A stretch of DNA of 63,965 bases, filler included, from Octopus bimaculoides (taxonomy: Eukaryota): the NCBI RefSeq assembly GCF_001194135.2. It is 4 parts of 4 records of this genome, joined end to end, with 100 filler letters (N's around TTAATTAATTAA, not from the genome) between each part and the next. Parts side by side here need not be neighbours in the genome. Positions count along the whole stretch, not along the records: positions 36,791 to 62,740 come from NC_068984.1; 3 more parts are not named here. One strand, 5' to 3'. Below are positions 14,801 through 62,606 of this stretch, piece by piece (the first letter of the stretch is position 1; each line of letters begins with the position of its first letter). The notes under the pieces are model-generated. The model did no database searches. It worked only from the letters and a program-made list of their open reading frames with translations, and was not told where the DNA came from. A program made the translations under genes and the position numbers.

Positions 14801-17443
14801 GCTATCTTTTCTGCTTAGTTTACTACTCGTAACAATATGTACATATAGTGTATACTTTAATGACTCTTAAACATCTTTTATCATTTATTTTACTTGATAT
14901 CCAACTTATCTCTTCTACATATATTACTATTAACCTTTTAAAAGTTAAATTTATTATTGTACAGTTTACTGACCATCAGCTGGTTGCTTTTGTGTATATT
15001 AAAAATTTGTATGTTTTCTGTATATACTGTATGTTCAGCCTTCAAATTTTTCTATCCAAAAGTGTTTTTCAACACAATATTTACAAGCTGTTATCTATAG
15101 CTTTTTATGTACTTTGAGATCCTGTTCCAAAAGAGAATTATTTCATTGTATATTTTGTTAACCCTTAATATATATTCCTTCTGTATGTCTTAATGTCTAG
15201 TTGGATGTATTATGTCAAGAGGAAAAGTTAATGGAAGAGATGAGCATGAAGCAATTGTTTCTGATGCATTGGTTTCAGAAGGTATGTAAAACTTAAACCA
15301 GATTCTTGATAAACCAACCAACAAAAGTTTATAATTACATAATCACCAACTTTACCATTACTTAACAATCATAAATTTCATATAATATTTGTTACTTGAT
15401 CTTAAAAGTCCTCCAATTTAGTATTTCTAGGCAAAATGGCTTAAAGGATTACGCTTTGTTGGATTCTTGACTCATCAGTCCTGAGTTCAAATACACTGCA
15501 GGTGTTTTATTGTGCATTTTGGGTAGGGCGCATAAACAAACTTTTGTTATTTCAGTTTGTCTAGCTGTGAGAGGAATGAGCATTTCTGAAAATTTATCTG
15601 TCATATCTTGGGCAAAAAAATGTTTGCTCAATAAAATGCTATGAAACTTTGTATCAACCAGTAGCCCCTTGTGTTGGCTGAGTAAATGCAGAATTGAGTA
15701 ACCTGCTAAAAGGGAATCAGCTCTTGTTCACTAGAGATATTTCCATTGCATTTATGGGAGGGATACTTTATGTTGCCTTAGTTCACCTGTCAGGAATATA
15801 TATCAGATTCAAGATCTTTTCTATCTCCTTCTCTGCAATTTTTTTTCTGAAGAAATCATCATCATCATCATCATCATCATTCAGGTGGTGAGCTGGCAGA
15901 ATTGTTAGATGCTGGACTAGCAGCATTTATTCTAGTTTTATTTTCTGAATTCAGATCCTACTGACATTAACTTTGCCTTTCATCTTTATGGGGTTGATAA
16001 AATATGTACCAGTTGAACACTGGGGTTGATGTTATTGACTAGCCCCCTTCTCCAAAAAGAAAAATTTCAGGCCTTGTGCCTATAGTAGAAAGAATTATAA
16101 AGGAAAATAAGGGTGGAGAGGGAAGTGTTGTCTTCTAACCAGTTTGCTGAAAGGTGAATGAAAATGGCGAGAATGGTGCAAATGAACAGGCCTGCCTTGA
16201 GCATGTGCCTGTAGTTGGAGAGAAGAAAATAAAAAGGCATCTGCCTCAAAGGTCCCTGGTTTTTATGGGGTTTTTCTGTGAGCAACCCTCGAATATCTAC
16301 CTGTTTTTGAGGATTACTTGTTGAATTTTAACAAAGATGTTAATCTTTGTTTACATGCAAAACCCTCATACATACACACATATGCACATACATTTTTTTT
16401 GTTTTGTCCTGTACTGTCCATAATGTTTTTTATTGTAAACCCTTTGTGATTAATAAAGAAATCATTATTATTATTGATGCTGGCCTTGAGCCTAAATTTG
16501 AAATATTTATTATTATTCCTGAGCAAAACAGCTCACCCTACTTGTTTCATTATACCTAACTGAATAAAAAAAGGAAATCTCACCTCTACTTTATAGCTAA
16601 GAAGTCGTAGGAAAGCATTTCAGCTATACAATCAATTGTTTTAACAAAAATCCAGTCCATTTATACAAGCATCACAGAAGTGATGGTAAAACATCCTACT
16701 TTATATTATATTTTGAGTTCAAATCCCACTATGGTCAATTTTGCTTATCAATCTTCCAGAGTGATAGTAAATTTGTACCAAGTGTGGCTGCATACCTAAA
16801 ATTTTATTTTTATTGTCCTGGGTTCACTCACACTATACAGTACCTTAGTCATGTGTTTTATCCTCAAACCAAACTGATTGCCAAACCCAATTTATGGCCT
16901 AGTGCCTACATCAAAAATCAATAGTGATACAAGTTTATATTTGCTACAATTGATGTAAGTAAATCAAAACTACTTTTCTTCATTAGCTTTCTGTTTCATC
17001 AAAAACACCCAACAAATATGAAAGGATACTGCAATTAACATCATTTGGTTGATGCTGGGTTAATTTGAAGAAATGTTTTTACTGATACGTCTGTAGAAAG
17101 TAGTACAATGAAGTGTATGAGAGAGAGAGAAAGAGAGACTCTGTCTTGCAATGTTAAAAAATGCTTCCTGTAGTTGAAATCTTCAATAATAAAAGAAATC
17201 TAAAAACCACATTTTGATAAAAATATATTAAAATTAGAATTTGTAAGAATTTTCATGACTGTAGACTTTAATAATTGTTTTCTTTTAGTAAAAATTACAT
17301 ACTCCCAACTAATTTATAAGTAACTTTCATCATTATAGTATAAAGATTATAGTTATTTATTGTTTCTTCTGCAGGATTCCCCCATGGTATTATTTTATCG
17401 GTTAAAACAACGTTACAATACATCTACTGAATGCAGCTCGTGA
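5707..17443 (+). CDS. PCGF1: Polycomb group RING finger protein 1 (PCGF1/NSPc1 orthologue), 7 coding exons: 5707-5809, 9143-9295, 9577-9639, 10665-10767, 13477-13612, 15201-15281, 17375-17443
   Basis: All introns are GT-AG with compatible phases (1,1,1,2,0,0); the exons total 708 nt = 235 aa + TGA. Translation: [101 protein letters not shown]...[17 protein letters not shown]...[24 protein letters not shown]...[49 protein letters not shown]. It has a C3HC4 RING and a RAWUL domain. [33 protein letters not shown], KIHETQPL, EFYxSRGL and YRxDEQ match human PCGF1 as recalled, better than PCGF3/5 or BMI1. Confidence 0.95.
6740..8140 (-). mobile_element. Degenerate hAT-superfamily transposase of the CGGBP1-like type, in a PCGF1 intron
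   Basis: Frameshifted ORFs give [55 protein letters not shown] and [15 protein letters not shown], corresponding to hAT catalytic D, D, CxxH and C-terminal motifs. Confidence 0.7.
9143..9295 (+). CDS. PCGF1: PCGF1 coding exon 2 (RING C-half)
   Basis: tttcag|TT TGT AAA AGC ... TTT GAA A|gtaagt; [51 protein letters not shown]. Confidence 0.95.
9577..9639 (+). CDS. PCGF1: PCGF1 coding exon 3
   Basis: tttcag|AT GAA GAG ... GAT G|gtaaga; [21 protein letters not shown]. Confidence 0.93.
10665..10767 (+). CDS. PCGF1: PCGF1 coding exon 4
   Basis: ctacag|GA GAT GAA ... TAT GG|gtaagt; [35 protein letters not shown]. Confidence 0.92.
11536..12795 (-). mobile_element. Full-length degenerate mariner (DD34D-type) transposon
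   Basis: ~33-bp TIRs (ttgtgttatcccataaataatgcg / cacattatttatgggatgacccaa) flanked by TA. The transposase starts at 12611 ([16 protein letters not shown]) and contains [17 protein letters not shown] and KVMLSVW; stops and frameshifts are present. Confidence 0.92.
13477..13612 (+). CDS. PCGF1: PCGF1 coding exon 5 (RAWUL)
   Basis: atctag|A CCT CAG ... TTG GAT|gtaagt; [45 protein letters not shown]. Confidence 0.92.
13811..13978 (+). mobile_element. RTE 3'-tail short repeat, young copy
   Basis: tctctgagtggttggcgttaggaagggcatccagc...ggacgttaaacg(atg)n; nearly identical to the reverse complement of 24470-24625. Confidence 0.8.
14141..14749. mobile_element. Non-autonomous DNA transposon with 38-bp TIRs, 72-bp internal inverted repeat and central telomeric repeats
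   Basis: 14142-14179 = revcomp of 14711-14748 (perfect); 14301-14372 = revcomp of 14514-14585 (perfect); flanked by ATTTTTTT on both sides (candidate 8-bp TSD in a T-run). Confidence 0.85.
14381..14478. repeat. Interstitial telomeric-type repeat (TAACCC)13 followed by (GGGTTA)3
   Basis: Read directly; includes TAACTC and TAACAC variant units. Confidence 0.95.
15201..15281 (+). CDS. PCGF1: PCGF1 coding exon 6 (RAWUL)
   Basis: gtctag|TTG GAT ... CAG AAG|gtatgt; [27 protein letters not shown]. Confidence 0.92.
15884..16092 (+). mobile_element. tRNA-derived SINE family B (ggcggcgagctggcagaatcgttag head), CpG-eroded copy
   Basis: Homologous to 26660-26900(-), 43265-43690(+), 53320-53525(+) and 59060-59270(-). 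Confidence 0.75.
17375..17443 (+). CDS. PCGF1: PCGF1 last coding exon
   Basis: ttctgcag|GAT TCC CCC ATG ... TCG TGA; [22 protein letters not shown], matching the PCGF1 C-terminal SPLLLQY motif. Confidence 0.9.
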   Translation, partial: DSPMVLFYRLKQRYNTSTECSS

Positions 17444-17894
17444 AATAGATGAAGCAATTTACAAATGAAATATTAATTGCTAAAGAACATTCCTGCTTGA
17501 TTGTTGGACTACATAAATTACAAATTAGAAACTCATTTTATTTGAGAAAAAAAAAAATGAAAAAAGAGGTAAGGCAAAAATCAAACATAAGTGAAGTGTT
17601 AGACAAAATACCTTATGGTAGTTGGTTAAGTCCCTTCCCTGTATGTTTTGAGCTCAAATCCTGCCGGGGTCAACATTTGCTTTCCTCCTGTCAAGGTTGA
17701 TAAAATAACTATGGTGATTGATAATGACCACAGTTGGAAGACCAAAAGAATGAAGTAAAATGAAAGAAAGAGAAGAAAAAAAAATACCCACAACAATGAG
17801 GAAGAACTTTGTAATAATTATCCAAAGAAATAGATATTCTTCATAATTCAGAGGAAGCAAGTCAGAGGATATATGCGAAATATATATACAAGTT

Positions 17895-17936
<42 letters not shown>

Positions 17937-19136
17937 TGTGTTTCTACTTGTGTATTGGTAAATGTGTGGATATATATATATATATATACATACACACACA
18001 CAAATGATGTGTTGTTTGTATGTATATGCATATGTTAAAATTCAAAAATATACTAAGTCATAAAGAATGAGAAAGAAAACACCATATTGGTTGTGGTGAG
18101 CAGGCTTGCATATTTGGCTGATATTTGAGGTATGTATAGTAGTTCAATCCCCACTTGATGCATTTATCTTTTATTCTCATTAATGATTTTATATTATTGA
18201 TTGTCTTATTTGCATGTATATACTTGTATATAATTCAAAGAACTTTGTTCTTTAATACAACATTCTTCATTTTTTTCATTCATACATGTATCATCTTCAT
18301 ATATCTTGCAACATCTGACTGTTATATAGTGCAAGGGCATACCTGCACACACGTTCACACAGACAAGCATATATAGTGTCTCACAAATGTCTACACACTT
18401 TTTATATCATATTTATATATGATACTATAAAGTGTATATGCATTAAGTAAAATAAATATCTTCTAAAGTGTGTATGAATTCTTCTGAGACATATATTTAA
18501 ATAAATGTTAATGTTTTTAAATTTGTGCAGATAATGAATTAATGTTTTAAAATTTATTACATTTCTTTTGTAACAAATGACTTATTATTTAAGCTTAAGC
18601 TTCTTAATTTTCAATTGCAAGGTTATAAAATCAACTCAGTCCTTGCTACAGCTATCTTGTCATCTTCACAGGCATGGCATATTGGTCTTCTTGCATTAGC
18701 CTGGCTAGCTGGAAAAAAAAATAGTATGTTGCTATTAAATGAATGAGTAGCTCATTTTAGGAAGAACATGAAGTTATGAAAATAGTTATTCAGTCTTACA
18801 ATATTTATATAAATATGCAACTATTCAGAAACATCTTAACATGAAAATAGGGCAAATGGATATCAAAATGCATGCATGTGATTGTGTGTATGTATATGTT
18901 CATGTGAGTGAATCTCTCGCACTCATATATGTGTGTGTGTGTAATATGTATGTACAGACATAATATATCTATTATGGATAGACACACATGAAATAGGCAA
19001 CTAGGCAGCAAAATTCTTATTCATGTTAGCAACATATTTAATCAGTAAGCATGCACAACTCAGCAGGTAGCCAGTGCTAATACTTTATATGCAACAAACA
19101 AGAAGAATGAACTTTATATATGTGTGTATGTATGTA

Positions 19137-41407: not shown

Positions 41408-41430
41408 ATTTACGTATGTATGTATGTATG

Positions 41431-41495
<65 letters not shown>

Positions 41496-41698
41496 GTCTG
41501 TCTGTCTGTCTCTATATATATAGGGAGAGAGAGAGAGTGAGAGAGAGAGAATATATTCTTTGCTCTACTGCTATACACTGGTGCGTGTTGAACCCTTGGA
41601 TGTCTTGCACACGAACATGTCTAACGACGTTGTTAAACATTATGTATTCATGTGTGTGTGTTCGCGCGTTATGTTATGTGTGTGTGCACGCGCGTTAT

Positions 41699-41766
<68 letters not shown>

Positions 41767-42370
41767 ATTTTTGTGTAGGAAACAGCTTTTCTTTGAAGCN
41801 NNNNNNNNNTATTTTCGATTACAGTTATTTTCTTAATGATTTTTCATATTTCTCTTTTATATTATATTTAGTTTGGTGCAATTTAGTTCCTACGTTCATT
41901 AACTTTTCTAGATTTTCTTGATTTCCCCTTCTGAATAAAGTAGATGATAGCTAAGTTTTCAAAGCCACAATCGATACAAAGAGCAGAGAAATATCTAAGA
42001 AACCCTTTACATATTTTTCTGCTGTGAGGAAGAGGAAAGATATTATGATATAAGTAGTGCCTTTCACATAACTTGGGATTTTATCTATTATACGTTCTTC
42101 ATTCACACAAAACGGCAAAATCATTCTTTTCATTGGGAAAATGAAAGTGAGAAAGTGGAAACACGTTAATGAACCTGGCTCCGTCATAATTTCTGACTGA
42201 ATATAAAGGACTAACAATTTAATTGCAAATAACCATTAAAAAAACTGGAAGTTCTGCATAAATGCTTCCAATATAATACATATTCGTATATAAATGCGTA
42301 CGTAAATATAGGCATACATGTATGTATGAGATATGTGTGTGTGCGCGTGTGTGTGTGTTTGTATGTGTGC

Positions 42371-43264: not shown

Positions 43265-43690
43265 GAAGGCGGTGGGCTGACAGATTCGTTAGTACGCCGG
43301 GCAAGATACTTTGCGGCATTTCGTCCGACTTTACATTCTGAGTTCAAATTCCGCTGAAGTCGACTTTGTCTTTCATTCTTTCAAAGTCAATAAGATAAGT
43401 AATGGTGTCGATGTAATCCACTTATCCCCCTCCTCGAAATTGCTGGACTAATGCTAAAATTTGAAACCAATGTTATCATCCTCCTTAAGGCGGCGTGCTG
43501 GCAGATTCGTCAGCACGCCTGGTAAAATGCTTAGCGGCACTTCGTCCGTCTTTACGTTCTGAGTCCAAATTCTGTCGATGTCGATTTTGCCTTTCATCCT
43601 GTCGGGTTCGGTAAAATAAGTACCAGTTGAGTTCCGGTGTCAATGTAATCGCCTAAATCACCTGCTTTGTCAAAATTTGAAACCATTGTT
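43265..43690 (+). mobile_element. Two head-to-tail SINE family B copies
   Basis: Heads at ~43266 and ~43487, each preceded by tcatcctccttraaggcgg. Confidence 0.8.
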
Positions 43691-46499: not shown

Positions 46500-48140
46500 T
46501 ACGTTTTATTCTTTTCTTGCTATCGTTTTATCATGGTCCATTTCAGTTCCACTTTTAGCTTGGATTTCAGTTGTTTTACAGCTTTTGTTGTTTCTTCTTT
46601 TCCATCATAGTTGTTAGGTACTATGATTTTTTTTCTATTTGTCAGCTTCCTTAAAGACTGAAAACAGTCTTTTGTTTCGTTCGTGTTTTGTAGCTATTTT
46701 TATTAGTTTTCCTTACTTCTGAGGTAGGTATTTCTGTAGTCTTACGGTGGTTATTTTTTAATAGTTTTCTCACTGTATACGGCCTCTATGACCTTTGATA
46801 CATTGTGTATATAACCTTTCTATGTCAGATTTTGGGTGGTGCATCCTAAGTCTTATTATTTTCCATGCTTTGATCAGTTCATGTAGAGTCCAGTTAAGAA
46901 TATTGTAGTTGTAACTTATAACTGGCACGGCTAGAGTGTTGAAACCTATTATCTTGTTTTTCGCATTGAGCTCTGTTTTCAGTATTAATCTAACATGTCT
47001 ATAGTATTCTTTTCTTATCTTCTCAATCATTTGTTTGTTGTATCGTATCTAGTTCATTGATTCCTAAGTATTTGTATGTCTGGCTTTAGCCTAATTCACT
47101 TATTTCATTTGTTTTATCTAGTATGGTGTTGTTACTCTTAACTAGTTTTACTCTTTTCAAGGTTGCTTTGGCACATTTTTCTAAGCCAAATTTCATGTTT
47201 ATCTCTTTGGTAAATCCATGTACCGTCTGTAGTAATGTTTCCAGTTATTTATCATTTGTAGCGTACAATTTTAGATCATCCACATATAAGAGGTGGCTGA
47301 TTGTTTTGCCGCAATAGTTGTATCCACATTCAGTTCTGTTTAGTATGTCAGATAAAAATGTCACTGCCAAGTAGAAAAGGAGTGGAGGGTGCATGTCTCC
47401 CTAGAATATTCTTCTTCTAATGGGAATGGCTTTGGTTTTTATGAGTCCGTCTTTTGCCTGCAGCTGTAGCACTATCTGCCATTTATTCATGGAATGTTTT
47501 ATGCATTTTTATGATTATTGGTACTATCTTGTTCATAGCTACTGTTTCTAGGATCCATGTGTGGGGAATACTATCAAAAATGTTTCGGTAATCGATCCAG
47601 GCCATACTTAGACCCTTCTTCGGCTGTCTTCAGTTATGGCTTTATTGATCAGTAGCTGATCTTTACAACCATATAAGACTTTGCAGCATCTCTTCTGCTC
47701 TCGTCCAGATGTTTTCTTATTCTCTGCGATATTATTGCAATAAAGATTTTGTAGATTGTAAGGAGACAAGTTATCGGTCTATAATTTTGCGGGTTTGCCG
47801 TTTCAGTGGATTGGGGAATTAAGATAGTTTTTCCCTTCCTTGAGCCATTCAGGCATTGTCTCTGGCTCTGTTAGTATTTCACTAAATTTCTCTGCCAGCT
47901 TTTTGTGTTCCTGTTAGGTATTTTAGCCAAAAGCTGGGAATCTTGTTGCGCCCGGGTGCCTTCCAGTTGCTAAGTTTTTGCAGTGCCTAGGTGACCTCTT
48001 CAGTTGTTGTAGGGGTCCAGAGTTATCCAGGTGCTGTGTTCGTTGTTTTGATAGATTTTTCTGAGGTTTTCTTTCGCCGACCATATTTCTTTCCAAAATT
48101 CTTCCACTTCTACTGTTAGTGCTGCATTTATCTCTATTTT
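46500..48140 (-). mobile_element. R4/Dong-clade non-LTR retrotransposon RT fragment
   Basis: WKAPGRNKIPSFWLK, NYRPITCL, GIFQGD, YVDDLKLY, MKFGLEKCA and EYYRHVRLILKTELNAKNKI...MHHPKSDIERLY motifs; frameshifted. Confidence 0.85.
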
Positions 48141-48654
48141 TGTTGTTGTTGTTGTTGTTGCTGCTGCTGCTGCTGCTGCTGTTATGGCCGCCATACTGGG
48201 AAGACACGGTTACTTAAAGCTCCGCAAGTTTTAAGAGTGTTTATAAACTTTTCCGTCTTTTAATGCCCCGTTCTTTCAGTTTTATTGCCACCACCTTATT
48301 TCTGACATTCTTTGGACTGCGCCGATAGTATTTTTGTTAAGAAACATCCGCTGTTTTGCAGGGGTGCACATCAATATTTTTTTTTTTTTCCATTCGCCAA
48401 CTAACGAGAAAAGCAAATATTTTGCTATTTTTCATATATATTGAAACATAACTGATAAAGAAGTCATCATAATGTTCGATGACGGGACGCGTTCCTTGTC
48501 GGAGAAAAAAGAGAATACTGGCGTACTATTGACTACAGTAAATGACGTCACCGCCACGAGGCGAATATATTTTCGTCTCTAAGCAGTGTCAAACAGCAAA
48601 GCAGTTATATAATTAAGCATAATTACTGAGTTGTGACAATAGAATTGTTAACTC

Positions 48655-49650: not shown

Positions 49651-50244
49651 AGAGAGATATTAAAGCATAGGGGGACAGTTTTGATTGGCATATAGTATTT
49701 AACTGTCTTCATGAAAGAAACGCATTTCCACAAGGCACTGTAATGAAGGGCAGAGATGATTCCCATAGGCTACTTTCTCCTTCAGAGGGAAGAATAGAAA
49801 ATAAGAATGTTTGGTCCAATATGAACAGTTGCCTAAATAGCAAGAATAGCTGCAGTATTAATAGTAACATAAATGAAGAAAATATTCAATAAGATTGAGA
49901 ATCAATACACGATTGCCTTTCAGCTCTGCTAGTTTCGTCTTCTTTTCAGTGGCTCAATTGCTGTATTACACAGTGATATCTTGGGGACAAGTTAGATTGT
50001 TGTCCATCAGAATCGTTTGGCATTATATTAGTTTGACGCTCGAGAAAGTGAGAAAGTCTTTTACGTTTCGCGCCTACGCTCTTCAACAGAAAGGAGTAAG
50101 AGAAAATAGACAGAGAAAGAATAAAATAACATGTGGATTTAGCGATCAAGCATAAAATAACCAACGAAAATTTATGTTGCATGGAGCTGAATCCAACTGT
50201 GATTATATGCGTTGAGTGCCACTTTTTCGTGTGTCCTCTCACTC

Positions 50245-50273
<29 letters not shown>

Positions 50274-50278
<5 letters not shown>

Positions 50279-50471
50279 GTAAAAATATGTGACACTTATT
50301 CGGTAGCCATGATAGAACTCCGAGTTTCGGATGCCGGAGTGGGAACCCATGCCAACATCTCTTCAGTTATCCGGCTAACTGAAGAGATGCCGGTGTGGGT
50401 TCCCACCCCGGCATCCGAAACTCGGAGTTTTATCATGGCTACCGAATAAGTGTCACATATTTTTACAGATA
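50274..50471. repeat. 198-bp near-perfect palindrome (foldback MITE in a TA site)
   Basis: 50274-50369 pairs with 50376-50471 around tccggc, with few mismatches. Confidence 0.9.
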
Positions 50472-50537
50472 AATTCCTCTATTTACATAATATCGAGGTC
50501 TCTTTCTTTCTTTTGTTGTCCTTTCTATCAATGTATG

Positions 50538-50568
<31 letters not shown>

Positions 50569-50758
50569 TTAAACTGAAAGTTTGGGGAGGGAAAGTGGTG
50601 AGAGCAGTAGGGAAATACCTCCATACAGTACAACTCAAATATTTGAATTGATAGGTGTTTTCTAAGGATGTGAGCCTTACTTGTCAGCACATTATCATTT
50701 GCTTTTCAAATCCCCCAAAAACAAAATCTAACCCTCGGATGTCTTAGGGAACATTTAT

Positions 50759-52475
50759 TTACAAAAGCGTATATTTTTCATCAAATTTTTTCAGAGATGC
50801 TTTTTCTTCCTTCTGCTTGTATCTATTAGAAATTTCCAGAAGAACTCCTACAACCAAAATGAATATCGAACCGAGAAATAGCAATACGCCAAATATTGGT
50901 TTCTCCAGTTTGGACGACTTCTCTTTTGCAATATTGCCGTTTCGGTTGATTTTCACATTTGTTGTTGTTGTTGTTGTTGCTGTTGTTGATATTTGTGGTT
51001 CTGTAGCTTCTATTGCCCTTCCTTCATCTCTATTACTGCGAAGGCTTGTGCTTGCATTGTTTCCGCCAATATTGGCACCACCAACAAAATCTTCCCTGTC
51101 ATCGACGCCATTTTCTCTGTCAATGCTCTCTGTCAAATATTGTCGGTGAGTTGATGTGATCGCTGACACGCTTCTCACAGTTGATATCGATCCTGTAAGA
51201 ATTAAATGAGATTTTATAAGGTTAATCAAACTGTGACACCTAAACAACGAACACTTGGCACTTTTGAATATATTTTATAGACGGGACAAAAAGTGAAAAA
51301 TTAAGAAAGCGAAGGAGAGACAGAAGTCAAAGAAAATCAAAGTTCTGAGAATTGAATTTATTTTCAACTTATCTATTTAGTTCTAGGGTTTACGACCTTG
51401 GTTCCAGTTTTTTTTTACAAATGATTCCTCGGGTTTTACTTCAAATCTCCAAGGTTTAATCTCAAACTTAAACTCCCAGGTTATATTTGTCTTTGGGGTT
51501 CGCAGGTAAGTTCAGGGTATTGACTGTTAAGCTTATCTTTAACGAGAAATTGCTGTTCCTGGCCCAACAGTAAAAGTCAACGATTAGCTTGAACATTTAC
51601 TCGGTTTCATGTGTAGCTTTCTTAACACCCCTGGAATTACATAGGGTCCGTAAGTGTGTCGTTGTCAAAGCTGGATGACCATATTTAACTCGTTAAGAGT
51701 CAACATTTTCCTTTAACCATAGTTGATTTCAAGCGTGGAATCTCTTGTTACTTCCCTTCTTGTCACAACCAGTTTACACTCCGAATTCTGTTGGTTGAAA
51801 ATGTGTTTTAAGATTTGAAGATAATATATTTCTTTGATTGGAGGAATGACGGGAAAGCTTCTTCTCTCCCTTCCGGGATGAAACCAGGTAGATTCAAAAT
51901 CTTGAAGTTTTCCCTTTCACATAGTAAACGGTGAATATTGTGGTCATTGTATGTATTTTGCCTTTGAAACAATACATCTTAATGAATTATTACTGACCAT
52001 GGAATGTCCAGACACCTAATTGATTGAACGTTAGTGAAACTTTAAAACAAAACACAGAAGGTATCCGCCGAATAAATATTGTACTGTACAATAAAAATAT
52101 TTCTCTTGCTCGTTATAAACACTGTAAAGCTTTCCCCAATTAACTGAGCACTATAAATGAACTTAGAACCTGTAATTTACGTGCTAAAAAATAAATCATG
52201 ATACCAGTATAACCTATCATTTAAGCGCTTATTTTAACAGACTTGGAAATTCAAAATTAAGTTAAACTCGTAAAAATGGTAAGATTTGATACTTATGTCG
52301 ATACATTCTAAAACACATTTAGTAAACATTTACCACTTTACATAAATTCATCTACGTAATATATGGGTGTAAACTGAGGGAACTAAAAGACTACATGAAC
52401 TAGATAAGCATACTTACTGCAGATTGCTAATATATAATAGCACAAAATCATACAAGAAAACAATAGCAGAAACAT
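50759..52475 (-). CDS. Unrecognised small single-pass type I membrane protein (163 aa), two coding exons 52475-52418 and 51192-50759
   Basis: Exon A encodes hydrophobic MFLLLFSCMILCYYILAIC and ends at a perfect phase-1 donor A|gtaagtat. Exon B starts at the phase-1 acceptor ttaattcttacag|GA and is open for 143 codons: Ser/Thr-rich stalk, TM PIFGVLLFLGSIFILVVGVLLEI, basic juxtamembrane NRYKQK, tail ending KYTLL*. AATAAA overlaps the stop. The start codon is uncertain (another in-frame ATG at 52535, and an acceptor at 52492 could bring in an upstream exon). Confidence 0.6.
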
Positions 52476-53282
52476 GCAATATTTCAAAAACCTGAACAAG
52501 GCGGTTAAATATAGAATGCAGACGTTACTTAACATTAAAAGGCCATTTGGCCAATTTCACACCAAATCAAACTTCGTTATTATAACTTGTCTCTGGAACA
52601 TAGATTTGTAAAATGGTTATCATTCTATATGAGACATGGAAAGACAAGCTATTTAATCTGAGCAACAGTTGTCGGATTTTTTGCTTCTTTCTCTACTCTC
52701 ATAAACTGTCTTTGTCATTTAATATTATCAGTTCCGCATAAACGAATGATAACGTTCATTTCCACTTCAAATATTACGGTACATTTCTGCAGCAATGTGT
52801 TTTAGTGATATTTAGGGCGTGTTTTAAAAATCGTCATTTCTTTGACAAGCTCTAGTTGATATTCGGTATATATATATATATATATATATATCATGGATTC
52901 TACTGTCGTTAGACGACCTGTGCGGGTTCTGCAATTTCTTGCTGAACAACCACACAGATGATTTGTTTATAGTAATCAAATGTTTGTGTACACATAAGCT
53001 CACTCCCTCCATCAAATCGACATTACCTGTACAGGTGCTCGACATGTCACACGTAAGATGATGAAATGATCGTGGAGCAACGTGAAATGAAGTGTTTTGC
53101 TCAAAACGCAGTGCCGGGCCTGAGAATCGAAATCACGAACTCACAATCACGAGTGCAACACCCTAACCACTAAGCTATGCACCTTCAGTATATATATTTA
53201 CGCGTGTATGTATGTGTGTCTATGTATACGTACATGCATGTATGCAAAGATACACAGACACACACACACATACATACATACA

Positions 53283-53314
<32 letters not shown>

Positions 53315-54334
53315 GATATAAGGCGAACTGGCAGAATCGTTATCACTCAGAGAAAAATGCTTAGCGGCATTCCGTTCGTCTTTACGTTTTGAGTTCAAAT
53401 TCCACAGGAGTCAGCTTAGCCGTTCATCCTTTCGGAGTCGATTAAGTAAGTACCAATTGAGTATTGGGGTCGAAGTAATCGACTTACTCCGCCCCCGTAA
53501 TAGCTGGCCTTATGCTAAAATTTGAAGACACGAAGACACACACACACATATTTGGGCACTTGCCAAAAGATTTCACAATACAAACGATATCAAAACAAAA
53601 TGAAGTGAACGAATTATAGTTAAAGGTATGACACAAAGGTTTGGGTTACCCTTTGGAAGCACTGCTGCAAATTTAGATGGATGAAATAGACGAAGTGCGC
53701 GTTTTTCAAAGAAACAACAAAGGAAAAAAAGAAGCTGATGGTTTGAGAGATTGAAAGCATTTAACATGCCTGTCTTAATAATAATCTATGGACATAGACG
53801 ATAAATTATATCAGAAATGTTGAACAACCCAGGCGATATTGTTTAAGTTGGAAAAAATGGACAGAACGAAGCAGTCAAACTAACGGACAAATTGCAAGAG
53901 AAGGAAAAAATCTACCGCGATTTCAAGTATTATAATAGTCACAAACTTTTACAAGCCCACCCGTGAATTGGAGGGAAAGCAGAAGACACAGAACACAGTC
54001 AAAGGTAAAGACGATAACATAGATACACGTCTGAGATATTTCAATATTGGAAATATTAAATCGAATATCGTAACACTAAACTCTCACAAATCTCGGAAGA
54101 ATTTTATCATAAGTCCCGAAGAGTTCATCTGATGCGGATACTCATGCAGAAATAACAAAAATCGAAATAGAAAAATCAGTAAGAAGAACTGAAAACCGTG
54201 AAACATTCGGTGTAGATAGCATCAGTGCTGAATAAAAACTGGGGAAGTGTACATGCTTAATGTTTACGTAATATTCAACATATGGAAAACTGAAAACCGT
54301 TAAACGACAGAACCTGTGTATATACTCTCTTTAC

Positions 54335-54690
54335 TCTTTTACTCTTTTAATTGTTTCAGTCTTTTGACTGTGGCCATGCTGGAGCACCGCCTTTAGTCAA
54401 GCAAATCGACCCCAGGACTTATTCTTTGGATACCTAGTACTTATTCTATTGGTCTCTTTTGCCGAACCGCTAAGTTACGGGGACATAAACACACTAGCAT
54501 CGGTTGTCAAGCGATGTTGGGGGGACAAGCACAGACATACAAACATATACACATGCATATATATATACATACATATATACGACGGGCTTCTTTCAGTTTC
54601 TGTCTACCAAATCCACTCACAAGGGTCTGGTCGGCCCGAGGCTATAGTAGAAGACACTTGCCCAAGGTGCCACGCAGTAGGAATTAACCC
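54335..54690 (-). mobile_element. SINE family A nested in the RTE
   Basis: Reverse complement of 49280-49640; the tRNA head is missing. Confidence 0.85.
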
Positions 54691-55162
54691 AGAGCAAAAA
54701 CATGGAAAATTACAGAGTAATTTCTCTTTTATCGATACCGTGTAAGTTTTTGCTATAGTTCTCTTCAGCGGAAAGGTAAGTAAAACCGAAGGAACGAAGG
54801 GTAAGTATTGATTTTAGGTCAGATGGAGGCACAATTGATACTAAGTTTAAAGTGAAACAGATTACTTTAAAACCAAAAGTACGTCATTTTTCCCTCACAC
54901 TTCAACCTCATTGATCTTAAAACTGTCTTCGACACGATCTGGCAGAGAGAACTGGGGTAAATGATGACTGTGGTAGAAGCACACCGCAAGATAGTGTGTA
55001 TTGAAAAATCGCTGAACAACAGTGCTGAGTTTATTGTGGTTAAGGGCGATCAGTTGACAGTTTGCTTAAAGTTCGCATGGATCTAAGATAAAGCTGTCTG
55101 CAATCCTTTAACATGTTCATCGGCTTTATAGAATTTACCATGAAAAAACTGAAAATTTAGAT

Positions 55163-55485
55163 CTTTTATCTATGGACTCCTTTGATTATTATCTTATTCT
55201 GGTGGATCATCATAACCATTCAATGTTTAAAAACCAGTTTTATAGATATTTCTTCCAAAATTCCTATTTTGTTTTTCACACATTAATTTGTGTATACTGA
55301 ACTATGTAAAATATTAGAGAAAGAAACCTAGCTGTTTCTTGCGATAAATACATCTAAAGAAAAACATTTTCGTGGACCCTTGATACACTACTGTGGGTTG
55401 CCACTTTTCTATTTTGTTTGCGTGGACCCCCGAAGATCTCTTATTGACCTTCTGGGGTCATATGGACTCGGGTTGAGAACCACTG
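55163..55485. mobile_element. hAT (Charlie-like) MITE with the left TIR lost
   Basis: Right end ggttgagaaccactg; ATTTAGAT present on both sides (55155-55162, 55486-55493). Confidence 0.6.
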
Positions 55486-55821
55486 ATTTAGATGAAACAC
55501 TAGCACTCACTGACATTTTCTCCCAAGGTATTAGGTATGCTGACGAAAAAAATATCAATGTCTATGAACTTTGGCATACTGAAAATTTTCACTGAACATT
55601 TAGATGAAGCATGCATTAAACTGGACGTTTCAAAAATAGCATGGAAATGTCTGAAAATGTGAAATTATGGGTTAATCTGGGAAGACTAAATAGGCTTGAT
55701 CTGGAATAAATGGGGTAGTTAGTCAGTGACCCAAAGTTAGAGACTATATAACGTCTTTATTTTTACAATCGTTACATTTGCATCTGGAACGTGAATCCTA
55801 AAATCTGGGGATGCAAGTAGG

Positions 55822-55987
55822 CACTGGCATAGCTAGAGTATATGCCGCCCGGGGCGGCCCTTTCGTTTGCCGCCCCAGGACCCCACCAAAAACACATACT
55901 GCCTACAGCAGACCCAAAAGTGCTGACCCTTTAAAAATGCTGCCCGGGGCGCACCGCCCCTACTGCCCCCGCCCAACTACGCTAGTA
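55822..55987. mobile_element. 166-bp GC-rich hAT-like MITE
   Basis: Imperfect TIRs cactggcatagct / aactacgctagta; 8-bp TSD caagtagg / caggtagg. Confidence 0.7.
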
Positions 55988-56697
55988 CAGGTAGGCTAGA
56001 TGATTTTCACATGTAGTATTTAAGGTCTATACTGGTGATATTACACGATTGACATAGAAATATTTCCGTGAAAAAAAAGCTTCATATTTCAGATACTTTT
56101 GCTAAGTTAATAAGAAGAAACCCGAATGGTTCGGCCGTGTTTTAAGATCATCCAATAACTCCATAATTCCAACATTTCATCAAGACTTTACAAATTTCAA
56201 ACCACGTATTATGCTGACCAAAAGACGGGCTACAACTTCTCAGATCAATGAGGATATAAACATTATCACTTACAACAGCAGGTGGGAAAGATACAAAAGT
56301 GATAGTCTTGGACGCAAGGGAGAACGAAAATCTAGAGAAAACCAAGTGACTAAATGTTTGAGTGTGCGTAGAAAGAGAGAGAGGAAGAGAGAGAGAGCGA
56401 GACAAAGAGAAATAGGTACATATATAGATACATATAGACTAATACACAGTAAGATATATGTACGTATGTATATATGTATGCATGTATAAAACTCACCATT
56501 ATAAGAAGCCGAACAAATTGTTTGACTAAACATGAGAACCAGGAAAAATAAAACCGAAATTTCTAGCTCGGTCATGCTTTGACACTTTGTTGAAAATCAA
56601 AATGTCGTACGTTCAAAGCGTCTTATAAAACGCTGTTACGTCTCTTGTTTGCAAACGGTTGATAGCAATGCGAACAAAGCAATATATGCATTTACAT

Positions 56698-57023: not shown

Positions 57024-58117
57024 ATTTACATAGTTTCGCTATAATCCGGTCGCTTTTTTTTTTCTAAGAGTTTTGTTTGCTTGTTTGTTTGTTTGTTTGT
57101 TTTTTGCTTTTGTTTTTTTTACAAACAAGTGAGCTCTTACATGTTCGCTCAATTCGCTCGAAGTGCAATCATCTCTTCTTAATAACACATCTTAACGTTT
57201 TAAATAAGGAAACGGTATATTACATAGCATAGTTCTATGTACCCATGAAAAAAAGATTGGATGGTCATGACTGAAATGTATTTAATCATAGGTATGCTTG
57301 ATTAGGATTGACCTGGGGCTAAACAATAATAACTATATACGTTACTTATCAGGAGAGAATAGTCGTTCTATTTTCTCTTCGTTTTATCTTTGTCCTATCA
57401 AACTTCCAATTTCTTAAATATGCTGTATACTTACTTTGTCGGCAACAAATGCAATAATAATTTTAAATGGTGGATGACACACACACACACACACACGATG
57501 CAGATACACACATACGCATGCAAACACACACACAGAAACGGACAGACACGCACACGCACACACATACGCACACATGCACACAGACGTTATATTTTCCTCG
57601 AGATTGGCGAACATATTTTCCTGTTTTCGCTAAATTATATAGATAAAGGAATTTTCTTCTGGGCTTACATTAATACACATGACGAAGTGGAAAGCACAAT
57701 ACCAACAAATAAAAACAGCGATGAAGCTTGTGTTTAACTCTCGATTAACACTGGTCAACCACAATCTTGTGATCAAAGACATTCCAACAGCGATAATCAG
57801 CAATTACCTATTTGACGTTCGTAAAATCGAATTTGTTTTAGATTCAATTTCATTTCAACTCGATTAGCATGTCTTGTAGACTCCCTTCTGCTCCCCGTTT
57901 TATTGTGAATCCTAACGAAATAAATACTTACAAATCAGCAGAAACTCAATGGAAAGCATACAATTACGACACTGGATTGATCTTTCTCAGATTCAACGAC
58001 TTGTATTGCTTGATGTGCCCGCCGTAAATTGTTGAAGAATCCTCACCTGTGCCCATGGCGAAACTCTATTCAAAATAAGTCTAATATTTTTCCTACTTTT
58101 TACACGTTATTTGTTGT

Positions 58118-58548
58118 GGCGGCGCAATGGCCCAGTGGTTACAGCAGCGGACTCGCGGTCATAGGATCACGGTTTCGATTCCCAGACCGAGCGTTGTGAG
58201 TGTTTATTGAGCGAAAACACCTAAAAAGCTCCACGAGGCACCGGCAGGGGATGGTGGCGAACCCTGCTGTACTCTTTCACCACAACTTTCTCTCACTCTC
58301 ACTCTTACTTCCTGTTTCTGTTGTNNNNNNNNNNNNNNNNNNNNNNNNNNNNNNNNNNNNNNNNNNNNNNNNNNNNNNNNNNNNNNNNNNNNNNNNNNNN
58401 NNNNNGAATATCTCCGAGAACTACGTTAAGAGTACACGTGTCTGTGGAGTGCTCAGCCACTTGCACGTTAATTTCACGAGCAGGCTGTTCCGTTGATCGG
58501 ATCAACTGGAACCCTCGACGTCGTAAGCGACGGAGTGCCAACAACAAC
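58118..58548 (+). mobile_element. tRNA-derived SINE family E (gap inside)
   Basis: Head ggcggcgcaatggcccagtggtt...ggtttcgattcc with A/B boxes; (aac)n tail. Confidence 0.75.
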
Positions 58549-60194
58549 ACATTCATAGTGTGTACCACTCATAATTATGATAAGAAACGTTTTGTTGAAA
58601 TTAACTTTTTGGATCACTATGATTTTATGAACATCAAATAGGAAATTACCGCGATAACCATGTATGCAATTCTTTTCTAATCTAGGCACAAGGCCCAATA
58701 ATCCTGTTTGCAATTGCCAACATATGGAGTTACATTCTTCAGGACTAAGTTATCCTAAAACAATTTTTAAGACATTGGGGTTTGGTTTCAGGGGCAATTG
58801 TCTGAACAGCAGTGTGGAGGATCCTACACACGCTGCTTTTGAAATTTAAAAAAGAAAAAAACTCAATATCGTGCTGGCTATCGTCTAGAAATATTTGTCC
58901 TCTAATGACCTCATTATCATTATTAAACAAACTACCAAAAACATTCACCTGCCAATACATTCACCTGCCAGTCACGCCTATATTTTTTAACGTCGATGTC
59001 TGTTTTCAAGCGACGTTACCATATTTCAACGGTTTTCCGAAACCATCCCGAAATAATCTTTTCTTCTATAAGTACAAGGCCTGAAATTCGGGATATTACA
59101 TAGACTCCCAGTGCTCAACTGGGGTTTATGTAATTTTATCGACCCTAAAAGGATTAAAGGCAAAGTTGGCTTCGACGTAATTTTGAACTCAGAACACAAA
59201 GAACCGGAATAATTGTCGCAGACCATTTTGTCTGGAGTGGTGAAAATTTTGCCAGCTTGCTGTTTTATCATCTCAAAATCTCGCATGAAGAGTGAAATTG
59301 TGAGTCTGAAATTCCTCCTGGAGTAAAACACACACATGCACACAAACACACACACACACACAATTCTCGTTGATGACATTTTATAGATATTATGTATGTT
59401 GGGACACTTTAATTAACAAAATTCGTCATTTAAATATCAGATCTTCGAAAAGTTAGAATGCAGTTTCGAATACAATAGAATGTAGAACATAATTTGGCAA
59501 TCCTTGAGTTTAAAACCGCAGCCTCACCTTAGAGAAATACTTTGATTTCAATTGTGTATCTTCTATCAGGATCTGACTTCTGTTTTTTTTTCTCACCTCT
59601 GTCAAGCACCTCTGCGTTCAGTGTCCGGCTGTTCTCTGTCATTATATAAAATTATTACTTCGAAGATTTTATCATGTGTCGTTTTTGATTCTCTTTTTAC
59701 TGCTTTTCGTTATATTAGAATTTACTGCTGTTGTTGCAATTGTTCCTTTCTTCGATGGTTTTATTTTCTTTATTTGTTTTGCTTTATCTTACTTTCATTT
59801 CATTTTTTTTTTTTTTTNNNNNNNNNNNNNNNNNNNNNNCTGTGGCCATGCTGGGGCAAAAGTGCCCCACAGAAAAAAAAACAGTAAAAGAAAATTCAAA
59901 ATACACGTATCTTAATTGTTTAAAAACAACGCGCATTAATTGCAGGCAAAAAAAATCAAAACAAAATTTTAAAAACCTGTGTAGCAGTGGTGAAAACAAA
60001 CAAGCAGTTTGAGAACAGTGAAAGTGTAAAATAAAAATAAAAATAAATAGAAACGGAAAAATAAAAGAAAAAGAAAATACGGTCCTGATAGAAGTTAAAT
60101 ACGATGAAATTAATTGTTCGCTGTCGTGAAAGTGACTGATGTCGTAAACTCCAGAATAGTCCGTAATTTATTGTTTCCCATTTAAATAAGTTTA

Positions 60195-62460
60195 TATTTA
60201 CAAAATATTCAGTAGTCTCCATGGACGCACAAGACTCCGCAGAAGTAACCGACTTAGTCAGAATATACCTACTGCTCAAATTTGAAGAAGAATTCCCTGA
60301 ATTAGAAGGTGAATTATATCGGGACGACGCACTATTCTTAGTTAGGAATGCCCAAAATAGAAAATTAGAACTCTACAAAAAAAGACTACATACTTTTTTA
60401 AAAACCAAGGACTATCTATTATCATTGAAAAGGATAACAACCCTGTTAACTTCCTAGACGTCAACTTCAACCTTAATACTTCTACCCACCAACCTTGCCA
60501 TGAACCTAGCACCAATATTACATGCATAAACGTGCACAGCAACCTACCCTATAACATTATAGAAAACCTGACCACTAACATAAAAAGAAGAATAAATCTA
60601 TTATCATCTAACGAGGAAATATTTAACAAACATAAGGACTATTATAACCTAGCACTTCAGAAGGCAGGATATAAATATGCAAATAAATGTAATAAAAACG
60701 ACAACACTAGTACTAATCATATCAAACATAATCATGAAACAAACAACATTGATTATATTAGTGAATCCAAGTCATCTGATGAAATAGTACGCCCTAATAA
60801 GCGTATAACGGAAACTCTCAATAAGAGTCACAAACATAACATCAACAAAAAACACAACAATCATCACTATAATAACTATACTAAAAAACCCAACCAATAC
60901 GAGCACCACAACCTAAATATAACTAAAGAAAAGAATTTAAAAAAGTCAGTAATTACTGCCTTTTTAACCACACTAATATAAATAAACATAGAAATACTGA
61001 CAACAAACACTACAAATGTATAATTAAAGATAAAATAGGAACATTAAGCCAATAAACAGAAAAATATATGCATAATCTAAACATGCCAAATTACTTCAAT
61101 GACATGTATAACCATAGCACTCTAACAAGGATGGAGATAAAATAGCAATAAAGACACCAATACCGTGTATTAGAAAAGCTGACCCTCTAAACACAACCGA
61201 ACCTTTAAATAAAACAAACAACAATAATACTACCTGGATTATGATCCTTTTTGCCAGACATTTAAAGTCTAACTTTATTAGATCCATTAGAATGATAATT
61301 AATAAAAACTTCAAAAACTCTAAATATGCTAAAATATTTAATAATGAAAAAAATTAGATTTGGATTTTCAGTTTCTCCAAATCTTTTTTGCGGATAATTT
61401 CTTCTTTTAACAGTAAGAAATTGGATCTATTCTATAATTTAAAAATACTACTAAAACTGTACCTAGTACCTCCAATAATAATACTATTAATAATACATCT
61501 CATAATCCTGCAATTAACAACAACGATACTGCTAATAACCATAACTCTATTAATCCAACAAAATATAGAACACCACTACACCACCCATAAATTCAAATTG
61601 TAATTGTAGAGACCCTAATGCCTGAGAAGTAGATATAAATTGTAAAAGGAAAGAAGTTGTATACCAAGAAACTATTATAACTCAGAACTCCTCTAGATAC
61701 ATATGCGTAAGTTGAACCCAAAACTCGATTAAATCAAGAATTTCTAACCATAAATCTACTTTTAGGGACCATCGAAAAGAGAATAGTACAGGACTATCTA
61801 AAAAAAAAATTGGCATCTCAAAAGAAACAATATTAATTTCTCCATTTCTTGGAAAATCCTATCTTTTTCCCCCTCTTGTAGAAATAATAGTAAAATTAGC
61901 AAGTTATGTTTAGAAGAAAGCTATAACATAATGAGAATGAATGGAAATTTGGTTAATACTAGGGATGAAAAAATTTCCTCATGTAAACACATGACCAAAT
62001 TTCTATTCATTAATCTAAAATAACTCGTCACTCACCTTCTGTATAACCCACACATCCCTATCCATTTAAAGAATTTTTTTACTCATCTCTTTCTCCGCTT
62101 ATTTATCTCCCCTACATTTACTTTGGACTATCTAACTTCATATTAGAACTTTTAGATTCACATTTTTATCTTTCTAGACACCGTAAGTATATACTACTTT
62201 AGTTGTAATATTAAAAATTGCTTCTCTGCTTTTACTTATTTTCTCTTTTATTGTTAATACGTGTTACATTAATATGATTTTTATGTAAACATGAGTCTTT
62301 TATATACATCATCTTCTCTCTCTATCACTCATACCTCTATTTTGTTTGTTCTTGCTATTTGTTTACGTTAACTATCTAATATCAGCTTCTTATATACCAC
62401 TTCTTCACACTAAACTTCATTCTTCCGTATAGATCTTTTTAAAGATATTATACCACGTAC
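60195..62460 (+). mobile_element. Penelope-like retroelement (RT + C-terminal GIY-YIG), degenerate
   Basis: MDAQDSAEVTDLVRIYLL, ELYRDDAL, NFLDVNFNL, HSNLPYN...RRINLLSSNEEIFNK, NCNCR...VVYQ, ISNHKSTFR...NSTGLSK, SWKIL...KLCLEES, NTRDEKISSCKHMTKFL*. Probable upstream RT remnants lie at ~58560-59000. Confidence 0.88.
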
Positions 62461-62606
62461 TGATTTGTATTCTTATTTATACATCGCTGGCACCAAACGC
62501 GTGACTCCAAGCCACCAAAGGCTTTTGCTGCCCTTTGAGTTCGCAGCTGTATTTCTGTATCAAGACAATAATATATACATATATATAATAATCTATATTT
62601 TTTTTT

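Follow-up and report, generated by a model that had tools for sequence, protein, structure and literature searches.

An annotated but uncharacterised Octopus bimaculoides gene, LOC106870196, is predicted to encode a small, apparently Octopus-restricted type I membrane protein

The window analysed here is a stretch of 63,965 nucleotides of Octopus bimaculoides DNA, filler included, and the piece that we studied occupies its positions 36,791-62,740 (25,950 nt). A preliminary description of this piece had proposed an unannotated gene for a small membrane protein, with two coding exons on the minus strand. We find that the locus is very probably the annotated, uncharacterised O. bimaculoides gene LOC106870196, with coding exons at 56575-56497 and 51192-50759 on the minus strand. 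The central proposal, that this is a real gene with two coding exons on that strand, is borne out by its match to an annotated protein and by its conservation in Octopus sinensis. The gene is, however, already known: its model is public under RefSeq and UniProt accessions (XP_014771687.1 and A0A0L8HLE5), its O. sinensis counterpart is entered as XP_036358562.1, and part of it is contained in the Octopus vulgaris protein CAI9720591.1, so that the claim that it was unannotated does not hold. The value of the finding is thus mainly one of bookkeeping, in that it rediscovers a functionally uncharacterised gene model which RefSeq and UniProt already contain. The product is predicted to be a 170-residue single-pass type I membrane protein.

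The identity of the locus is established by direct comparison with the public records. The piece is identical to chromosome CM046604.1 of assembly GCA_001194135.2, at approximately 50.61-50.64 Mb, in 21982 of 21982 overlapping bases, and the annotated span of LOC106870196, 5817 nt in the NCBI record, corresponds to window 56575-50759 on the minus strand. When the 163-amino-acid (aa) product given in the preliminary description was compared by a word-indexed search to 5.8 billion proteins, there were two matches, both from Octopus: the 'uncharacterized protein LOC106870196' of O. bimaculoides (170 aa) and LOC118763302 of O. sinensis (173 aa). The 170-aa product of LOC106870196 is stored identically as XP_014771687.1, UniProt A0A0L8HLE5 and an EukProt entry. 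The O. sinensis orthologue (LOC118763302/XP_036358562.1) encodes a protein that is 94% identical and has the two-exon structure as well, and O. vulgaris CAI9720591.1 carries exon 2 of the gene, with two differences relative to O. sinensis. LOC106870196 has no annotated neighbour within 10 kb in either direction, and a literature search for the LOC, XP and UniProt identifiers of the gene found no mention of them.

The exon structure is supported both by the annotated protein and by the O. sinensis locus (coordinates of all features are given in Table 1). Residues 1-27 of XP_014771687.1 align by tblastn at 100% identity to window 56575-56495, and residues 27-170 are 100% identical to the translation of exon 2; the two exons, of 79 and 434 nt, add up to 513 nt, or 170 codons and a stop codon. 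The terminal exon at 51192-50759, its acceptor and the phase-1 junction had been given exactly in the preliminary description. The ATG, the donor at 56497/56496 (ATG/GTGAGT, in the context AATG/GTGAGT), the acceptor, the stop codon and the frame are all kept in O. sinensis, where exon 1 is 97.5% identical with zero indels and exon 2 differs by 19 substitutions and a single 9-nt in-frame indel. The intron is collinear with that of O. sinensis at ∼92% identity of aligned bases, with many indels that are not multiples of three. A match of exon 2 to a repeat had been named in advance as grounds for rejecting the gene; within the piece we found no second copy of the exon, apart from an ACA/CAA microsatellite that it shares with positions 48137-48185.

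The first exon had been chosen wrongly. In the preliminary description, exon 2 was joined to a 58-nt segment at 52475-52418 on the minus strand, which starts with an ATG, encodes the hydrophobic sequence MFLLLFSCMILCYYILAIC and ends in GCA/GTAAGT, while position 51192 is preceded by ttcttacag. Joined to 51192-50759, this segment yields 492 nt and exactly the 163 aa reported; the sequence described and its conceptual product had been transcribed correctly. The 163-aa product agrees fully (100% identity) with the annotated protein from SISTVRS... to the C-terminus, but its first 20 residues differ from those of XP_014771687.1, an intronic pseudo-exon having been taken instead of 56575-56497. Both database proteins start MTELEISVL(F/S)FLVLMFSQTICSASYNG, not MFLLLFSCMILCYYILAICR. 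Over 11.5 kb upstream of this acceptor, only four distinct GTRAG donors terminate, in phase 1, an open frame that starts with ATG and is 40 nt or longer, and just two of these four frames are strongly hydrophobic, the annotated 56575-56497 and the segment at 52475-52418. The choice was nevertheless a reasonable one, because this segment is the nearer of the only two hydrophobic candidates.

For the segment at 52475-52418 to be used as a first exon, if only as an alternative to 56575-56497, transcription would have to begin within the annotated intron and yield the 163-aa product, which we consider very unlikely. Its ATG, its 19 hydrophobic residues and its consensus phase-1 donor are all in place, it is among only two hydrophobic candidates of this type in 11.5 kb, and the GTAAG of its donor is kept in O. 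sinensis. The O. sinensis counterpart (ATGTTTCTGTGATTG...), however, reads MFL-stop-LVSC, with an in-frame TGA at codon 4. Moreover, the segment is conserved no better than its surroundings (93.1% identity to O. sinensis, against 91.9% for the surrounding intron), and no database protein has its N-terminus: the best matches share exon 2 alone, and both use MTELEISVL... instead. Thus, the search for disrupted frames at the orthologous locus, which had been proposed as a check on the gene as a whole, refutes the proposed first exon and leaves the gene itself intact. A reading made from sequence only recovered the terminal exon, the acceptor and the phase exactly, yet was misled on the first exon by a nearer decoy, and a cross-species comparison settles this choice at once in favor of 56575-56497.

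A comparison of dN and dS (the nonsynonymous and synonymous distances) between octopus species had been suggested as a check. The 170 codons aligned between O. bimaculoides and O. sinensis differ by 10 synonymous and 11 nonsynonymous changes, with a Nei-Gojobori dS of 0.089, a dN of 0.029 and a dN/dS of 0.32. The share of nonsynonymous changes expected without selection is 77%, and the binomial probability of observing 11 or fewer among 21 is P = 0.013; this check came out in favor of the gene. The coding sequence has one indel, of 9 nt and in frame, inside an ACA repeat that codes for poly-Thr, compared to 3-11 indels in each of the non-coding blocks, mostly not multiples of three, and to roughly one per 100-140 nt in the flanks. 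Most amino-acid replacements between the two species fall in the ectodomain; residues 117-170, which make up the transmembrane segment and the tail, have one conservative K-to-R replacement versus three synonymous changes. These patterns suggest that the frame is maintained by selection and that the constraint is real but moderate.

A number of observations weigh against the assignment of the locus to a functional gene with the exons given above. The RefSeq record for the gene is a 'PREDICTED' model, and the O. vulgaris protein CAI9720591.1 shares exon 2 but has an upstream part derived from XPF, so that annotators differ on the 5′ end. The open frame of exon 2 spans 171 codons from stop to stop and is the second longest in the six frames of the piece, but its length on its own is matched in 6% of shuffles: the longest open frame in 200 mononucleotide shuffles of the piece had a mean of 125 codons (standard deviation 21), and 12 of the 200 reached at least 162 codons. 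Therefore, the claim that a long open reading frame (ORF) in such AT-rich DNA points to selection stands as a suggestion, but frame length does not decide the matter. The identity of aligned bases is 95.6% in exon 2 and 97.5% in exon 1, compared to 95.1% in the adjacent 424 nt of intron, and the sole in-frame indel sits in a trinucleotide repeat, where an in-frame change is expected anyway. Because the species compared are close, the evidence for constraint is only moderate. Finally, the statements on glycosylation, sorting and localization that we make below are all inferred at the level of motifs. The same frame had also been described as invisible to the ORF track, which is not so, since exon 2 is listed there mechanically as a 162-aa ORF with a TTG start at 50759-51247.

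We weighed the explanation that the locus is non-coding, in which case a chance frame, lengthened by the stop-free ACA microsatellite, would have been predicted as a gene in several genomes that are still ∼92-95% identical. This explanation draws on the frequency of ORFs of such length in shuffles of the piece and on a coding identity just slightly above that of the neighbouring intron, as well as on the lack of a Pfam family, of any homologue found outside Octopus and of any literature mention found for the gene. We nevertheless think it unlikely. Two open segments, separated by 5.3 kb, are brought into one frame by consensus splice sites that are conserved in both species, and their joint product has the coherent topology of a type I protein, with a signal peptide, a transmembrane segment and positive-inside residues. 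Furthermore, substitutions are skewed to synonymous sites (dN/dS and P value as above), indels are depleted in the coding sequence relative to the flanks, and the transmembrane segment and tail are nearly invariant.

The O. vulgaris model raises a different alternative, in which exon 2 would be the last exon of a longer transcript, produced by read-through or fusion, that comes from an XPF/ERCC4 gene lying upstream. The first 83 residues of CAI9720591.1 match human XPF residues 821-903 (E = 1.7e-21), which form the C-terminal helix-hairpin-helix domain, and the model joins this domain to exactly the acceptor that corresponds to window 51192; from this fusion it is implied that XPF lies upstream on the same strand. 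However, CAI9720591.1 is flagged as partial and hypothetical, and no XPF-like exon was found in the window or in the 10-kb upstream flanks of O. bimaculoides and O. sinensis. The XPF match ends at residue 903 of 916, near the C-terminus of XPF, so that the fusion would append a transmembrane protein to a nuclear enzyme of DNA repair, which is biologically implausible. Exon 1 at 56575, conserved between O. bimaculoides and O. sinensis, supplies an ATG and a signal peptide. We regard this alternative as highly improbable; CAI9720591.1 probably reflects either a chimeric annotation or read-through transcription.

With the exons of LOC106870196 as annotated, the predicted protein has the features that the preliminary description had listed: a signal peptide precedes a Ser/Thr stalk with an NAS sequon, and a transmembrane segment is followed by a positive-inside tail that ends in YTLL. 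Hydropathy windows exceed 1.6 only at residues 3-24 and 121-150. The signal peptide is predicted to span ∼23 residues, with a hydrophobic core (ISVLFFLVLMF, residues 6-16) and a small-residue cleavage-type motif, C-S-A, near residues 21-23. The ectodomain of ∼101 residues contains 27 Ser and Thr (27%), 13 acidic and 13 basic residues, and has two N-glycosylation sequons, NGS26 (N26) and NAS72 (N72), both of which are kept in O. sinensis. The trinucleotide repeat that codes for part of this region holds the only difference in length between the species, with three additional Thr codons in O. sinensis. The tail has 7 Lys or Arg among its 23 residues, and O. sinensis differs in it by one conservative K-to-R replacement. 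The C-terminal EKYTLL fits three published motifs: YTLL agrees with YxxPhi, E-KYT-LL with [DE]xxxL[LI], and the final T-x-L with [ST]-x-Phi-COOH, the pattern of a class I PDZ ligand.

An AlphaFold2 model, made from an alignment of two sequences, has a mean predicted local distance difference test (pLDDT) score of 54.9, which is of low confidence. Helices are modelled only at residues 2-36, in the signal peptide region, and at residues 123-168, and there is no folded domain. Across the membrane segment, the mean pLDDT of 10-residue blocks is 80-81, while scores are below 50 for residues 27-43, 53-56, 60-105 and 116-120, which is most of the region 27-120. The model is consistent with an ectodomain that is intrinsically disordered and probably a glycosylated stalk. 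The predicted product has the characteristics of the type I mucin-like class, which is a class of architecture and not a homology family: a signal peptide, a C-proximal transmembrane segment, a positive-inside tail and a Ser/Thr-rich disordered ectodomain.

These motifs suggest that the product may be a small, heavily glycosylated, mucin-like surface protein, the location of which is probably set by the tail. YxxPhi and [DE]xxxL[LI] are consensus sequences for sorting by adaptor proteins, and the motifs of the tail are read here on this basis. If EKYTLL acts as a YxxPhi and acidic dileucine signal for adaptor proteins, it would direct the protein to clathrin-dependent endocytosis or to endolysosomal delivery, and the basic juxtamembrane RYKQKEE could dock cytoskeletal adaptors.

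To place this protein, we considered both its distribution and its resemblance to known families. When 1.84 billion cluster representatives were searched exhaustively with a HMMER profile, the only matches were the protein itself and one other entry, P0004, and there was no credible relative outside Octopus. P0004 (E = 5e-4) consists of a 51-residue unit repeated three times in tandem, and its match is limited to the transmembrane and juxtamembrane stretch; we rejected it as an artefact. The homologue searches covered protein libraries, from which several cephalopod proteomes may be missing. Because the protein searches show matches in Octopus only, the gene is confined to Octopus by sequence, and it thus appears to be restricted to the genus. 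The suggestion in the preliminary description that the gene may be lineage-restricted agrees with this outcome, in that no homologue was found outside Octopus in those libraries, incomplete as they may be for cephalopods.

A stronger form of this view is that the gene is an invention restricted to Octopus or to octopods, encoding a young or fast-evolving mucin-like protein with a dual tyrosine/dileucine tail and a misleading database name; we put this forward tentatively, judging its chances to fall a little short of even. On this view, no ancestor would be recognizable in other molluscs; if true, it would be of modest interest. In octopus cell atlases, lineage-specific genes mark cell types (PMC9815951). 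If this gene marked a cell type (that of sucker epithelium, skin or immature neurons, for instance), it would join the lineage-specific genes that such atlases list but leave uninterpreted. A small membrane protein restricted to Octopus and carrying a testable sorting motif could also be of minor interest for cataloguing the lineage-specific genes of cephalopods.

The sole public functional label of the gene is the automatic UniProt name of A0A0L8HLE5, 'Syndecan/Neurexin domain-containing protein', according to which it would belong to the syndecan/neurexin family as a divergent member and act as a proteoglycan co-receptor whose tail would bind FERM and PDZ domains. With syndecans the product has in common its small size, type I topology, unstructured ectodomain and short tail, which opens with basic and then acidic residues (RYKQKEE versus RMKKKDE), and its juxtamembrane SNRYKQKEE has 4 identities in 9 positions with the syndecan C1 sequence VYRMKKKDE. 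However, PF01034 in the current Pfam is not matched at E ≤10 by any of the three Octopus proteins or by the isolated transmembrane segment plus tail, and the precomputed Pfam field of the entry is empty, although 47 of 47 retrieved fragments of syndecan-4 transmembrane and cytoplasmic regions carry this domain. Of these 47 fragments, 19 were aligned for a profile of the syndecan transmembrane segment plus tail. Comparison of the Octopus alignment to this 19-sequence profile with hhalign gave a probability of 0.84%, over nine columns with 44% identity. There are no Ser-Gly dipeptides, the sites of glycosaminoglycan attachment, in the whole 170-aa protein. In contrast to the class II PDZ motifs EFYA (syndecan) and EYYV (neurexin), the C-terminus is ...DEKYTLL, whereas the syndecan alignment ends invariantly in E-x-Y-A; the octopus tail also differs from that of syndecans in its length, of 23 residues. 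Nor were syndecans among the matches of a PDB sequence search.

Thus, the product shares a general design with syndecans, but since it has no Pfam, profile, glycosaminoglycan-site or C-terminal match, it lacks every feature by which membership would be defined. We therefore rejected its assignment to the Syndecan/Neurexin family (PF01034, IPR027789), for which the Pfam domain, similarity in C1 and in the profile, an EFYA/EYYV end and Ser-Gly sites were each looked for without success. The syndecan explanation is already largely refuted, and we consider it extremely unlikely. The UniProt name probably rests on the 9-residue juxtamembrane resemblance of RYKQKEE to RMKKKDE; it is an irreproducible label and should not be propagated.

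Other family assignments fared no better, and the statement in the preliminary description that no family could be recognized agrees with our Pfam and profile searches, which give no credible family. Pfam scans of the 163-aa product, of the three Octopus proteins and of the isolated transmembrane segment plus tail found nothing above threshold. The weak match of the O. bimaculoides protein to TMEM154 (PF15102; 16.3-16.4 bits, E = 0.008-0.009, far short of the gathering cut-off of 30.3 bits), with an alignment that covers the stalk and transmembrane region, is not found in O. sinensis and was dismissed as compositional, as were weak, sub-threshold Pfam matches to COX2_TM, TraD and DUF families. 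With the transmembrane segment and tail as the query, a search of PDB sequences returned only transmembrane-helix noise (E ≥0.24). The CD164/endolyn sialomucins and proteins with LAMP/CD68-type tails are small mucin-like type I glycoproteins with YxxPhi or dileucine motifs in their tails. The octopus protein resembles them in its signal peptide, Ser/Thr-rich disordered stalk, sequons, single transmembrane segment and terminal sorting motif, but differs in that no matches of sequence homology to them were found, so that the likeness is one of design only, and one that is predicted here from the octopus sequence.

Table 1. Features of the LOC106870196 locus in window coordinates
Feature	Position	Strand	Details
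First coding exon	56497..56575	-	79 nt; ATG at 56573-56575, with A at -3; encodes MTELEISVLFFLVLMFSQTICSASYN and the first base of Gly27
Splice donor	56491..56496	-	GTGAGT after ...AATG, phase 1; read directly; identical in O. sinensis (TATAATG/GTGAGT)
Sole intron between coding exons	51193..56496	-	5304 nt, phase 1; contains microsatellites, interspersed repeats and the first exon of the preliminary description
First exon of the preliminary description	52418..52475	-	Intronic; absent from the annotated proteins of both species
Polypyrimidine-rich splice acceptor	51193..51205	-	...ttaattcttacag/GA; read directly; identical in O. sinensis; also used by O. vulgaris CAI9720591.1
Terminal coding exon	50759..51192	-	434 nt including the TAA stop (50761-50759); residues 27 (last two codon bases) to 170
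ACA/GCA trinucleotide repeat	50960..50986	-	Encodes TTATTTTTT, residues 96-104, a mucin-like poly-Thr stretch
Predicted transmembrane helix	50831..50896	-	Residues 126-147 (IFGVLLFLGSIFILVVGVLLEI); Kyte-Doolittle 19-residue window peak 2.93; invariant between species
Predicted cytoplasmic tail	50762..50830	-	Residues 148-170 (SNRYKQKEEKASLKKFDEKYTLL); 23 residues, basic juxtamembrane RYKQK
Candidate polyadenylation signal	50754..50759	-	AATAAA hexamer; overlaps the last base of the stop codon; kept in O. sinensis (TTGTAAATAAATG)

In the remainder of the piece, scans for tRNA genes and against Rfam gave no matches, and neither did Pfam for its other long ORFs. The 113 N of the piece, in short runs at 58555-58641 and at ∼59810-59835, reflect gaps in the assembly of the source record. 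Dense di- and tetranucleotide microsatellites of the TATC, TGTA and TC type are found at 41420-41836, 50216-50350, 50450-50572, 53177-53398, 56400-56480 and 57477-57594; they give rise to many of the listed 'ORFs' of 100-140 aa (YLSIYLSI, ERERER) and to most off-diagonal BLAST matches to the O. sinensis locus.

Two interspersed repeats are shared with the O. sinensis locus. A short repeat of ∼170 bp, with copies that are 76-81% identical, is present in the window at 53321-53491, 43486-43663 and 43266-43424, and in the O. sinensis locus at 12023-12193 and 18897-19073; this family occurs both in the intron and downstream of the gene. A repeat of ∼430 bp is present in the window at 58116-58538 and in the O. 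sinensis locus at 17136-17499 (reverse), 11084-11259 and 9076-9254. One of the O. sinensis copies of the ∼430-bp repeat is a species-specific insertion, because it is intronic and the corresponding site in O. bimaculoides (51602-51616) is empty.

No open frame of the piece is longer than the one at 60361-60981 on the plus strand, within 60221-62463, which has 206 codons between its two stops. This frame, which contains an ORF of 149 aa with a GTG start (60532-60981, plus strand), is rich in Asn and Lys, has a GC (guanine plus cytosine) content of ∼0.29 and is without a Pfam match. The region 60221-62463 looks like a lineage-specific insertion, possibly with the decayed ORF of a mobile element, because these 2.2 kb have no collinear counterpart in O. 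sinensis.

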